Shown: positions 7,430 to 43,300, counted from the first letter of the stretch. The stretch: DNA of 64,000 nucleotides from Paraspadella gotoi (GCA_051294375.1 CM119265.1:13632124-13696123); one strand, 5' to 3'. Program-made: numbers and translations. The notes: a model not told the origin generated them from the letters alone.

Positions 7430-8087
7430 TGAAGAGACAGTGACGATTATTATTTATGTGTAGTGATAGAACCGTTCATATAAAGCAGTCCCTGAGCTTC
7501 GGATCAGGCTGTAACACCGAGTTAAAGGCGGGTTAAGCGCCCCGTCCCTCTTAACTGCCAGGCGACCACCGGGCTAGAACCCCAGACCTTTGGTTGGGAG
7601 GCAAATGACTTGCCTCCGGCACCAATGGCTGCTGATGAACGGTTGGTGGATTTTAGTCCACCATACATCCCCCCCTCCCGTAGAGAGAAGTCTGTTGCGT
7701 CTCTTCAGTGAATTGTTGTTGTTGGTGGAAAGTTCATCACCAAGTTGAGGCATGTCGCCTGATGTGTTGTGGGTGGAAAGTGCATCGCCAGGTTGAGGCT
7801 AGTCGCCTGAAAGTGTGGTTGCTGTTGTGTTCGGAAGTCGGGCTCACCAATGAAGAGACAGTGATTTTATTATGTGTTAGTGATAGAACCGTTCAATATA
7901 AGCAGTCCCTGAGCTTCGGATCAGGCTGTAACACCGAGTTACAGGCGGGTTAAGCGCCCCGTCCCTCTTAACTGCCAGGCGACCACCGGGCTAGAACCCC
8001 GGACCTTTGGGTTGGGAGGCGAATGACTGCTCCAGGCGGGACACCAATGGCCGCTGATGAAGGGTTGGTGGATTTTAGTCCATCATA
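7430..8087 (-). mobile_element. Complete TRIM (miniature LTR retrotransposon), family A, tRNA-like sequence in LTRs (Helenus-like)
   Basis: Direct LTRs 7851-8087 and 7430-7665; TSD GAAT at 7426-7429 and 8088-8091; PBS TGGTGAGCCCGACTTCCGAACAC 1 nt after 5' LTR; PPT GGGAGGGGGGATG before 3' LTR; non-coding ~185-bp interior. Confidence 0.9.
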
Positions 8088-8094
8088 GAATTAA

Positions 8095-40300: not shown

Positions 40301-43300
40301 ACCTTTCCGTCCTTCCTCGGCGGAACGTTCTGTACGAAAGAGCCGATGAGATTTCCGGCGGGACGGTAGCTGCCGACGACGTAGCACTTTCCGTCAGGCG
40401 TCTTGGCTTTGCCGAACCCCGCCTCCGAGCTCGATTTCCACACGACCTGAGTGAAGTGACCTGTGAGAAAGTACGGACCGTCACGGGGCGGGGGAGGGGA
40501 TGAGAAGAGAGGAGGGGGGAGGAAAGAAAAGAAATACTTGACTTGTGGGTCGTTACCCAAGAGCAACTAGGAAAATATATTGTTGAGAATTTTTATGCGT
40601 TACTGAACTCTTTGTTCGGCGAAAAAGGATACTGGAAAATGGAAAATGTTCTCATTCGTTTTTTTTGTTGTTGTTGTTTTTTTGTTTTTTTTTTTTGTTT
40701 ACTTTGGTTCATTAAAAAAAACTTCACACATAATACAACAAAAAAAAAATTCGTAATTGATTAAAAGCCAAACAGAACAAAATTGTAACGCTTAGAGTTG
40801 CAACTCTTTGTGTACCTTTTCTGCTTGGCTACTTAAATGGCTAATTATACTCGGCAGTGCAGTGGTTTCGGCGATTTGGTAACTTTGGTTTTATAACGCG
40901 ATCGACGACGACGACGACGGGGACGGAGAACTATTGGCAAATCTCAATCGGACGTTGTCGGCAAAGAGACTCGAAGATCGTTTCGTGGAGAGCGAACCGG
41001 TTCTCCTTGTTGTGCAGAGTGACAAAAATACGGAAGGTCGCTAAATCGCGAACTAAGACTGAGTTGACGACCACCCGACAAACCAGAGTAAAAACATTGA
41101 AGTTCTTCGACCTCTATCGCTTTCTAGTTCTTTGTTTCGATTTATAAAACCGGCGAAGGTCTTGCTGTTTTATAAACAGCAATTTATGAAGAACTATTTG
41201 TTAACATGTCTGTAAGGGATAGCATATGCTATGTCATTATCTTGTAAGAGTGATGGAGGACTTAAACCTACACAGACTGTCCACTGTGTCCAGTGTCCAC
41301 AACAACATATAATAGTGAAGTGACCGAGAGGGTCGCCATGCCTCTCTGTGAGTGTGGATAGCCCCCACACTTAGTGTGCCCAGTGGGTCTGGGAGATCTT
41401 TTCGTCAGTTGCCTTAGTTGACAGAACTTCGCATCCGGCGGTGGGCTTGCTACCGGGGGTTTAACAGGCACGTCACTCTTTTTGCAAGGTATATTCCGAC
41501 CAGGGCTAGAACCCGAGATCATTGGGTTCGGAGATGAAGCGTTAGCCCAGTACGCTATTATGGCGCTGATGGAAGGAACAGTCGTATCCAACGGGTAGTG
41601 ATATTACATCACGACAATAGCTTATCTATTAATTGAATGGATAATTTTTACATTGGTAGTACCAATTTCGTATATCTGTACAAAAATCTTTGACTGACCA
41701 CTTAGCCAATATCGATCAAAAGTCAATTTTAGCTCTTTCATTAGACAAATTGCTTTCGAGCATAATTCAATGAGTGGAAAAGTCGGTACTGTGGCGGAAT
41801 ATTCACACCGCCTCACGTCCACCATACTTCAGCCAAATCCATTGGCTCAGAGGGGGAACACACCATCCTAGGCGTAGTGTTCCATCCACAGTCCTAACGA
41901 CTTCCCTCTGCATTGGCAAAGCGAGACCGTCCTAGGGTAACCGCGCCAGTGACTGGAGGCGTCACTGAGGGTCAGAAGCACCCAAAGCCAACAGTGAAGA
42001 TGCCCCATCCCAATGGGCATCACAGGCAACCCGGCTGTTGCCATAAGTGGCGAGCCCTACTATCGAACACGCAACCTTCTCAGGGTATGCTACGACAAAC
42101 GCTTATGCCCTGCTGACTTTGGGTACGCTACAACAAACGCCTATGCCCCTGGGATACGCTACGACAAACGCCTATGCCCCCACAACTCGTGCTCTCTCTC
42201 TCTCCCACTATGGTAACTGTCTTGTCAGACACCTCTCAGGCTTGAGGAACCTGAGTGATGTCTTGGCCCGGGGATCCTGTGGTGGTATGTTTACTAAGGC
42301 GGGCCAAAATTGAACACTTTTTATAACTTGTAATTCTCTCAAAAAAATTCCTTTTTTCCTTCTATTACTAAATCGATTTTTAATGCAACTTTTTGAATTA
42401 GTTCATTGGGTTGTTGCACTGAAGCTTTTAAATATTTATTAATATATAACAAATGAAAAAAAAAATTTTTAAAAAAATATAGAGCTTGAAAAGTTAAATG
42501 AAAGTTAGTACTACAATTTTTTAAAATTTTGACAAGAAATTGGTTAAAAACAGAAAAAACGTTAAAAAAATCATCATCATCATCATCATTGGTTGAATTT
42601 TATAGTTTTTTAAAATTTTTATCAATAAAACAACAAAATTTTTAAAATTTGTATTAATAACCTTTATATAACTTTTAAAGTTCTATCAGAATCCATTAAA
42701 AAAAATTGAAAAAATAAAAAAAAATTTTAGCTATATATAGTAATAAAATAATCTTTAAATGCTTCCGTGCGCTTATTAATAAGATAATTTTTTAAAATTA
42801 TTTTTATTTTCATATTCTCTAACAGTCACTTTATCATTATTTATTTGAGAGAACTTCTAGTTTTCGACCTGTTCCGGCCTAATGTTTACACCACCTCACG
42901 TCCACCATCCTTCAGCCAAATCCATTAGCTCAGAGGGGGAACACACCATCCCAGGCGTAGTGTTCCACAGTCCTAACGACTTCCCTCTGCGTTGGCAAAG
43001 CAAGACCGTCCTAGTGTAACCGCGCCAGTGACTGGAGGCGTCACTGAGGGTCGGAAGCCCCCAAAGACAACAGTGAGATGCCCCATCCCAATGGGTATCA
43101 CAGGCAACCCGGCTGTTGCCATAGTACATTAATAATGTCATTATCTGCCTCACCCGAAGCTAGAGTCCTCGGTTCTTTTCCGAAGTCGTGCACTCCGATT
43201 TCCGAGTACCACTGCGTTGTGGCGCCGTCGCCGTCGTAATCGGCGCCGTTCGAAGCCCAGCGCATCGCGATGTTCTCTCCGAGTTTAACGCCTTTCAGTT

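Follow-up and report, generated by a model that had tools for sequence, protein, structure and literature searches.

The 64,000-nt stretch of Paraspadella gotoi DNA analysed here (hereafter the window; one strand, with all positions given as those of the whole stretch) contains four short units in which two direct repeats flank a non-coding interior, together with a solitary and a truncated copy of one of these repeats, protein-coding genes and other dispersed repeats (Table 1). A preliminary description of this DNA had read the four units as miniature long terminal repeat (LTR) retrotransposons with tRNA-like promoters rather than as pairs of short interspersed nuclear elements (SINEs), and had sorted their LTRs into three families, here called A, B and C. 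The first of these claims is borne out by fixed 4-bp target-site duplications (TSDs), a primer-binding site (PBS), a purine tract and the paired organisation of every unit. We regard it as nearly certain that the units are TRIMs (terminal-repeat retrotransposons in miniature), and as likely that the fuller explanation also holds, namely that they are non-autonomous LTR retrotransposons of the TRIM type with a tRNA-Trp PBS and 4-bp TSDs, family A carrying in addition a tRNA-derived module.

Table 1 Positions of the miniature LTR retrotransposons, their component parts, tRNA-like matches, the nested insert and genes in the window (CM, tRNA covariance model built for this study).
Feature	Position	Strand	Details
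Family A LTR, truncated	6793-6993	-	lacks ~32 nt at 3' end; BLAST 90.5% identity to A LTR positions 6-205; absent from the preliminary description
tRNA-like match in truncated family A LTR, CM rank 2	6888-6960	-	20.3 bits, E 4.5e-4
Family A complete TRIM, 658 bp	7430-8087	-	5' LTR 7851-8087, interior 7666-7850, 3' LTR 7430-7665
TSD GAAT of 7430-8087	7426-7429 and 8088-8091		ends verified
tRNA-like match in family A 3' LTR, CM rank 4	7561-7632	-	12.1 bits, E 0.18; more decayed
Family A polypurine tract GGGAGGGGGGGATG	7666-7679	-	adjoins 3' LTR
Family A PBS and leader TGGTGAGCCCGACTTCCGAACAC	7827-7849	-	first 13 nt against complement of tRNA-Trp 3' end plus CCA: 12/13
tRNA-like module in family A 5' LTR, CM rank 1	7978-8054	-	21.3 bits, E 2e-4, full-length; nhmmer E 2.3e-4
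PAN/apple open reading frame, 306 aa	13595-14515	+	four PAN/apple-like repeats
Family A solo LTR, 210 bp	18616-18825	+	TSD ATTT at 18612-18615 and 18826-18829
Family B complete TRIM, 729 bp	26746-27474	-	5' LTR 27222-27474, interior 26996-27221, 3' LTR 26746-26995
TSD AGAC of 26746-27474	26742-26745 and 27475-27478		
PBS/leader of 26746-27474	27185-27219	-	
Sex-peptide / myoinhibitory-peptide (MIP) receptor-like G-protein-coupled receptor gene	28952-32797	+	at least four exons
CAP / GAPR-1-like genes, two paralogues	33950-35360 and 40222-40566	both -	~6 kb apart
Family C complete TRIM, 760 bp	36105-36864	-	5' LTR 36569-36864, interior 36343-36568, 3' LTR 36105-36342
TSD ATTC of 36105-36864	36101-36104 and 36865-36868		
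tRNA-like match in family C 3' LTR, T arm / box B CCCGGGTTCAATCCCTGG, CM rank 5	36229-36246	-	local, 11.1 bits, E 0.37; nhmmer E 0.69
PBS/leader of 36105-36864	36544-36566	-	
Separate SINE-like sequence, CM rank 3	41492-41575	-	17.6 bits, E 0.003; nhmmer E 1.6e-3
Family B complete TRIM with nested insert	41790-43123	+	5' LTR 41790-42045, interior 42046-42277, 3' LTR 42278-42294 plus 42890-43123
TSD GTAC of 41790-43123	41786-41789 and 43124-43127		
PBS of 41790-43123, TGGCGAGCCC	42048-42070	+	one change
Nested insert, 587 bp, 21% GC, non-coding	42295-42881	none	in 3' LTR of 41790-43123, 17 nt in
Block conserved between families B and C	43013-43085 (B); 36608-36677 (homologous block in C)	+ (B); - (C)	alignment, pair counts
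Aristaless/Arx-like paired-class homeobox gene	49179-51116	-	homeodomain over three exons, 50404-50784, 49704-49787 and 49179-49661

Self-BLAST recovered paired terminal direct repeats in all four of the LTR-interior-LTR units that had been proposed, and we placed the LTR borders where the paired copies cease to match. Within units the two LTRs are 79–95% identical (E 1e-38 to 1e-108). They measure 237 and 236 nt at 90% identity in the family A unit, 253 and 250 nt at 95% in the family B unit at 26746-27474, 296 and 238 nt at ~79–87% with indels in the family C unit, and ~256 and 251 nt at 93% in the second family B unit, so that overall LTRs of ~236–296 bp enclose non-coding interiors of ~185–232 bp. 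The second family B unit is long because the 587-bp insert sits in its 3' LTR. At these alignment-defined borders the exact 4-bp TSDs first reported were present in 4/4 complete copies, and the solo LTR of family A likewise has a 4-bp TSD of its own, as had been claimed. The chance of one exact 4-bp match is 1/256, and five of them at alignment-defined boundaries far exceed chance. The solo LTR is the product expected of LTR–LTR recombination. Complete units, solo LTR and truncated LTR together amount to 3.3 kb, or 5.2% of the window.

For the family A unit, the insertion can be seen directly. Its flanks, when joined (7280-7429 plus 8092-8237), have an uninterrupted paralogue at ~9429-9596 on the minus strand, which spans the junction at ~72% identity, and this paralogous empty site therefore shows 7430-8087 to be an insertion. 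The flanks themselves are a diverged duplicate (~72%) of sequence 1.5 kb away. LTR pairs in the window are 5–21% diverged, which indicates that all copies here are old and probably inactive.

The PBS that had been described 1–2 nt after the 5' LTR was readily found, TGGTGAGCCC starting at 1 nt in family A and at 2 nt in families B and C. We compared the beginning of every interior with the reverse complements of 22 tRNAs plus CCA, each of which ARAGORN had confirmed as a tRNA with the expected anticodon. For all three families the best match among the 22 was tRNA-Trp, with 12/13 positions of the PBS TGGTGAGCCCGAC matching the tRNA-Trp 3' end plus CCA. The resemblance goes well beyond the PBS itself: a 23-nt leader, TGGTGAGCCCKACTNYCGAACAC, is common to A, B and C (four occurrences in the window, 0 expected) and is complementary to the 3' half of tRNA-Trp, comprising CCA end, acceptor strand and T arm, with 3 nt missing. 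This match extends over 23 nt in A, ~31–32 nt in C and 36 nt in B, where it reaches into the variable region. An nhmmer tRNA profile also detects the leaders, on the antisense strand, as expected because the T arm is copied there. A leader of this length could stem from a reverse transcriptase reading further than usual into the primer tRNA, or from selection for extended primer pairing. At the opposite end of the interior, the purine tract reported before the 3' LTR is present in all units; it is strong in family A (GGGAGGGGGGGATG) and short in families B and C (GGGGA, GGTGGGGGA). Because the PBS sits inside one LTR and the purine run inside the other, the orientation of each element is fixed, as minus for the family A unit, the first family B unit and the family C unit, and as plus for the remaining family B unit. 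Exact-pattern scans with the PBS leader and with the hairpin shared by families B and C (see below) returned 0 matches in metagenome contigs and 0 in viral contigs.

This anatomy decides against the null hypothesis of the preliminary description, that the units are tandem or paired tRNA-derived SINEs. Sequences resembling the tRNA-like heads of SINEs do occur in the window, one of them outside the elements at 41492-41575. Nevertheless, PBS and purine tract sit exactly at the inner LTR borders of each unit, the repeated unit is 237–296 bp long with defined common ends, and the units combine exact 4-bp TSDs with an absence of A-rich or simple-repeat tails and with a solo LTR that has its own TSD. 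We consider the SINE-pair reading refuted on the grounds of PBS, purine tract, fixed TSDs and paired units, and its probability as close to nil.

As originally stated, the elements lack coding capacity: the longest open reading frame (ORF) has 88 aa, and the longest ORFs gave no credible Pfam match. They might be internally deleted derivatives of an autonomous LTR retrotransposon with the same LTRs (similar to large retrotransposon derivatives, LARDs, or solo-derived), instead of a miniature lineage in its own right. In favour of this, the U5-like block and the leader common to families B and C would be expected had both been copied from one autonomous family. On the other hand, the interiors hold no gag/pol remnants and have short tandem repeats of their own (in the family B unit at 26746-27474, three ~34-nt units, GGGTACGCTACGACAAACGCCTATGCCC), and the two B copies share a 226–232-bp interior at 91% identity, from which it follows that the short form itself transposed. 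Origin by deletion appears unlikely.

We then considered the tRNA-like sequences in the LTRs. Neither ARAGORN at default settings nor the Rfam tRNA model (gathering threshold and E ≤ 10) detected a tRNA in any part of the window, and a search of the 1.3-kb slice 6780-8100 likewise gave none at E ≤ 10. Because of this outcome, and because Rfam E-values bear a 4227-family penalty, we built our own tRNA covariance model from 20 human tRNA sequences with the cloverleaf structure (from the above set of 22, Leu and Ser omitted) and ran it over the whole window with filters off. The best matches in the window fell in family A, and all matches in that family were full-length and on the element sense strand (Table 1). 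The ranking given by a sequence-only nhmmer profile agreed with that of the covariance model. Relaxed ARAGORN (85% thresholds) classed two copies of the family A module as tRNA-Gly(CCC)-like, as compared to 7 hits in 220 shuffled controls, and its call in the 3' LTR of the complete unit covers LTR positions 34–105.

The module itself, at LTR positions 34–108, comprises an acceptor stem, an anticodon-like stem and the T arm CCGGG-GTTCTAG-CCCGG. Both structural features singled out in the preliminary description, the 7-bp acceptor stem GCGGCCA/TGGTCGC and the 5-bp T stem, are present. Box B (GGTTCTAGCCC) matches at 10/11 positions, and box A is weak. In the solo LTR a 24-nt deletion has taken out the T arm. 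A relaxed ARAGORN search also suggested a second tRNA-like unit, downstream in family A and in the conserved block of families B and C, and this candidate was rejected as no better than shuffles (88 hits in 220).

An association of this kind has a precedent, which the preliminary description had correctly named as Helenus: Kojima (2024, Biology 13:119, PMC10886601) gives this name to TRIMs with tRNA-derived sequence in their LTRs, with 4-bp TSDs in animals, records them from fungi, plants and six animal phyla, and groups them with Cassandra and Ajax as TRIMp3. It is highly likely, in our view, that family A is of this Helenus type (TRIMp3). In the same paper, Helenus is proposed to arise through insertion of a SINE into the LTR of a TRIM (PMC10886601). 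In the window, an exact copy of the family A T-arm 12-mer GGGTTCTAGCCC is found in the SINE-like sequence at 41492-41575 (four occurrences versus 0.05 expected), which fits this proposal. The SINE-like sequence starts a GC-rich patch of ~330 bp (41250-41600, minus strand), directly upstream of the TRIM at 41790 and with no second copy in the window. This patch probably represents a tRNA-derived SINE with kinship to the sequence from which the family A module came.

The preliminary description had gone further and placed tRNA-like A and B boxes in each LTR. This holds for family A only. In family C we found a T arm with a canonical box B, GGTTCAATCCC, and, by eye, a box-A-like TGGCTGAGCAGG 44 nt upstream, at canonical spacing, with no cloverleaf; in family B we found nothing, and the box B that had been proposed for that family, GTGTTCCATCC, aligns with a segment of family C other than C's box B. 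The promoter assigned to families B and C goes back to motifs matched by eye, which the statistical tests do not bear out, and a tRNA origin of these two families is somewhat less likely than not. A 5S-like reading of families B and C, which had been prompted by the resemblance of GCTGAGCAGGCT to a 5S box A, was discarded: it had no Rfam support, and its box-C-like match lies on the wrong strand.

Several observations weigh against the explanation favoured here. With neither the tRNA model of Rfam nor ARAGORN at default settings detecting a tRNA, the module of family A can at most be a pseudo-tRNA. For family B, neither the covariance model run over the whole window (E ≤ 10) nor nhmmer (E ≤ 50) returned any tRNA similarity, and family C retains a T arm alone, at E 0.37–0.69 by the two methods. 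No TTTT run follows the tRNA-like part of family A, unlike in the Helenus LTRs of Nasonia, Saccostrea and Notospermus in the excerpt of published sequences. Sense-strand runs of four or more T are absent altogether; this absence is not significant against shuffles (P 0.15–0.95) and was dropped as evidence for Pol III because base composition explains it. The LTR ends here, TA...CA in family A and TG...TA in families B and C, also differ from the TG...CA of the Helenus sequences in that excerpt. Finally, inspection by eye shows a TATAAAC in family C, ~10 nt upstream of the block with the conserved hairpins, and an AATAAA in a single LTR of family A, ~20 nt short of the LTR end; these TATA-like and AATAAA-like motifs make transcription by Pol II possible.

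The lack of tRNA similarity in family B and its restriction to a T arm in family C, the missing terminator and these motifs favour a different reading. In it, the elements are TRIMs of the usual kind, transcribed by Pol II (TRIMp2); what resembles a tRNA in family A is a passenger with no promoter role, for example an old SINE insertion in an ancestral LTR; and families B and C never had a Pol III module or have lost it fully. LTR length points in this direction as well, the LTRs of 237–296 bp comparing with ~104–213 bp for the animal Helenus in the Table S1 excerpt, although the paper itself reports LTRs of up to 323 bp. However, the family A module keeps its 7-bp acceptor stem, 5-bp T stem and 10/11 box B, in sense orientation and in three LTR copies; the distance from the box-A-like sequence to box B in family C is the canonical 44 nt; and the TATA and AATAAA motifs are unconserved across copies or families. 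We therefore treat the TRIMp2 reading as a serious contender that falls short of being probable. Returning to TRIMs with a tRNA-derived module in family A, active or ancestral Pol III transcription from that module is possible on the sequence evidence, with the balance tilted somewhat against it.

Families B and C turned out to be less independent of each other than the division into three LTR families had implied. While family A is distinct and has in common with the other two only the leader, B and C have the same LTR termini, an ~85-nt block (~76% identical) in the 3' third of the LTR, and interior motifs, and the first 31 nt of their interiors are 93% identical. They are one lineage. LTRs begin and end with TATGG...TTCA in family A and with TGTGGC...GCCATA in families B and C, so that in each family one LTR end is TA, departing from the usual TG/CA. 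Every LTR has TATGG at one end: in A this is the 5' end, in B and C it is the 3' end read as its reverse complement. The other end starts with TG. All three families would accordingly offer an integrase one TA-3' and one CA-3' end, which might be the signature of a shared partner.

Within the conserved block of families B and C, two 7-bp hairpins, CAGTGAC/GTCACTG and GATRCCC/GGGYATC, are invariant across the six LTR copies; at one of the pairs, G-C has given way to A-U, with G-U as the state in between, which is too little for statistical meaning. Adjoining the PBS as it does, the block may be a U5-type cis-acting region. A more radical possibility is that it is a divergent twister ribozyme and that the elements are retrozyme-like, with transcripts across both LTRs being cleaved into unit-length pieces that then circularise, in the manner of plant hammerhead retrozymes. 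Rfam twister-P1 matched the sense strand of both B (43013-43085, 23.9 bits) and C (36608-36677, 21 bits), twister core features can be traced in the block (UAA site, GCC, P3 stem, compensated P4 stem and AAGC), and no part of the B and C LTRs is better conserved than the twister-like block. Against this, the scores are about one third of the gathering score of 67.2, the E-values of 1.1 and 8 are those of chance over 4227 families, and the two matches are homologous, hence not independent. Moreover, the segment due to form pseudoknot T1 is the 5' arm of the conserved local hairpin GATRCCC/GGGYATC, with a compensatory change, family C is without the AAA and the T1 partners, and its 3' LTR has lost the P4 region. 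A U5-type hairpin block adjoining the PBS accounts for the conservation. Consequently, we think it very improbable that the elements are retrozyme-like, and equally so that TAACCGCGCC-hairpin-GAGGGTCGGAAGCCCCC is a highly divergent twister ribozyme. Were it one, these would be the first LTR-type retrozymes in animals and the first with a twister in place of the hammerhead, with unit-length circular RNA intermediates.

The following mechanism would be consistent with these findings. Reverse transcriptase and integrase from an autonomous LTR element outside the window would have copied the TRIMs. A single Gypsy-like partner, primed by tRNA-Trp and generating 4-bp duplications, may have mobilised all three families, and it may have recognised them by the leader and not by the body of the LTR. 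The tRNA-like module of family A may act, or may once have acted, as an internal Pol III promoter; transcripts would then begin ~33 nt inside the 5' LTR and run on as far as the 3' LTR, and the repeated sequence left in the latter would suffice for first-strand transfer. A leader serving as the partner's handle on elements with unrelated LTR bodies would point to a milder novelty than the twister, and a more likely one.

Other repeats lie in and around the elements. The insert nested in the second family B unit has an 8-bp TSD, ATGTTTAC, at 42287-42294 and 42882-42889, and an imperfect terminal inverted repeat (TAAGGCGGGCC / TAGGCCGGAAC), and is present as a single copy within the window; by TSD length it looks like a hAT-like miniature inverted-repeat transposable element (MITE), separate from the TRIM. 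A near-perfect AT-rich long hairpin (7046-7189, arms ~35–40 nt), lying between the truncated LTR and the complete unit of family A, gave many weak Rfam matches to microRNA precursors on both strands (E 0.03–0.9 in the 1.3-kb search). Its form is typical of a small foldback MITE, and these matches are not evidence for a microRNA. Copies of an AT-rich dispersed repeat were seen at 5025-5917, 17651-17731, 17885-17928, 26643-26734, 41617-41673, 54655-54688, 60761-60794 and 61712-61737, stopping 12 nt before the family B insertion at 26746 and ~117 nt before that at 41790, a proximity that may stem from a preference in insertion or simply from how dense the repeat is. A repeat family of ~200 bp is represented by two inverted, 83% identical copies, 27917-28116 (+) and 59457-59654 (-), with weak tRNA-like matches at their homologous ends (covariance model 6.7 and 8.5 bits; nhmmer E 0.34 and 0.65), and is possibly another SINE. 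In addition, 22-bp tandem repeat arrays occupy two distant sites (61897-62248 and 8991-9210), (CT)n/(GA)n microsatellites of 60–130 bp occur at about 19.8, 22.3, 23.3, 35.9, 43.6 and 56.9 kb, and the window contains a Tc1-type helix-turn-helix remnant.

As to the genes, the aristaless-like gene has its best matches in insect aristaless, over the homeodomain only. The best named matches of the receptor gene were from Capitella, Plakobranchus, Platynereis (MIP receptor 1) and Lingula (annelid, mollusc and brachiopod) at 36–40% identity. The two CAP / GAPR-1-like genes have a 68-nt exon segment in common (71% identical), and the family C element lies between them. The PAN/apple ORF has as its sole database relative a Phytophthora apple-domain protein (27% identity), with no close relative. 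On these gene matches the host looks like a protostome, distant from everything in the protein collection searched and not obviously among the taxa listed for Helenus.

Taken together, the window provides an independent example, probably from a lineage outside the 2024 survey, of TRIMs with a small-RNA-gene module in their LTRs. The class is seen here in decay, one family having a recognisable pseudo-tRNA and a sister pair having a T arm only or nothing. In annotation, such elements push up the numbers of tRNAs and SINEs and can readily be taken for pairs of SINEs. The long tRNA-Trp leader, common to families with differing LTRs, offers a concrete means of tracing the autonomous partner, and it bears on what a TRIM must retain to be mobilised. 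What the preliminary description observed was for the most part accurate; its interpretation was right in kind and went too far for families B and C and with regard to Pol III.

Compared with known systems, the elements share with tRNA-derived SINEs (SINE2) a tRNA-like head with box B and, at 41492-41575, the 12-mer GGGTTCTAGCCC, but SINEs lack LTRs, PBS and polypurine tract (PPT) and have A-rich or simple-repeat ends and TSDs of variable length. Retrozymes are likewise non-autonomous LTR elements with 4-bp TSDs, PBS and PPT; their LTRs are unlike those of their partner and each carries a hammerhead (Cervera, Urbina and de la Pena 2016, PMC4918200). Rfam gave no hammerhead match in our sequences, and the twister-like match is at chance level. 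Classical Pol II-transcribed TRIMs (TRIMp2) resemble our elements in size, absence of coding sequence, PBS/PPT, solo LTRs and dependence on an autonomous partner; the tRNA-derived module sets family A apart from them, and no difference is demonstrable for families B and C.

Cassandra of plants and Ajax of nemerteans are closer in kind, as they too carry inside a TRIM LTR a small-RNA-gene module with an internal Pol III promoter. Theirs is derived from 5S rRNA, for which Rfam searches of the entire window and of 6780-8100 returned nothing at E ≤ 10. Cassandra makes 5-bp TSDs, and so does Ajax, versus the 4-bp TSDs seen here. Cassandra also keeps a terminator in its LTR, whereas no T run follows the tRNA-like part in ours.

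Helenus is the closest relative in design. Approximately 30 probes of 8–14 nt from the three LTR families, compared with the Kojima 2024 consensus file (DataS1), yielded no family-level match and two chance short matches only; such k-mer probes exclude relatives of at least ~90% identity well, with a power of only ~90% near 80% identity. No published text containing the diagnostic strings was found. Given the absence of the probes from that consensus set, the families are probably undescribed, as compared with it by k-mer probes. Apart from their LTR ends, our elements differ from Helenus in lacking the T run that, in the excerpted published LTRs, comes directly after the tRNA-like part; in having longer LTRs than the animal families of the Table S1 excerpt, if below the paper's 323 bp; in a leader that copies 23–36 nt of the tRNA-Trp 3' half as opposed to ~10–18 nt; and, for families B and C, in having no demonstrable tRNA-derived part. 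Pol III transcription is, according to Kojima, unvalidated for Helenus itself (PMC10886601). The likenesses are nonetheless extensive. The order LTR-PBS-interior-PPT-LTR is the same, the lengths of 658–760 bp fall within the 311–1263 bp published for Helenus (LTRs up to 323 bp; PMC10886601), and the TSD is 4 bp, as in all animal Helenus. The LTRs of family A hold a tRNA-derived sequence in sense orientation that encodes no functional tRNA, several families with solo LTRs and TSDs occur in one genome, and the PBS is of the tRNA-Trp type, which is also used by Helenus-2_SyJa and Gypsy-32_NVi (PMC10886601). Family A thus displays each testable defining feature of Helenus, and the elements leave current understanding unchanged, being a useful annotation and a modest extension of the kind described in 2024.

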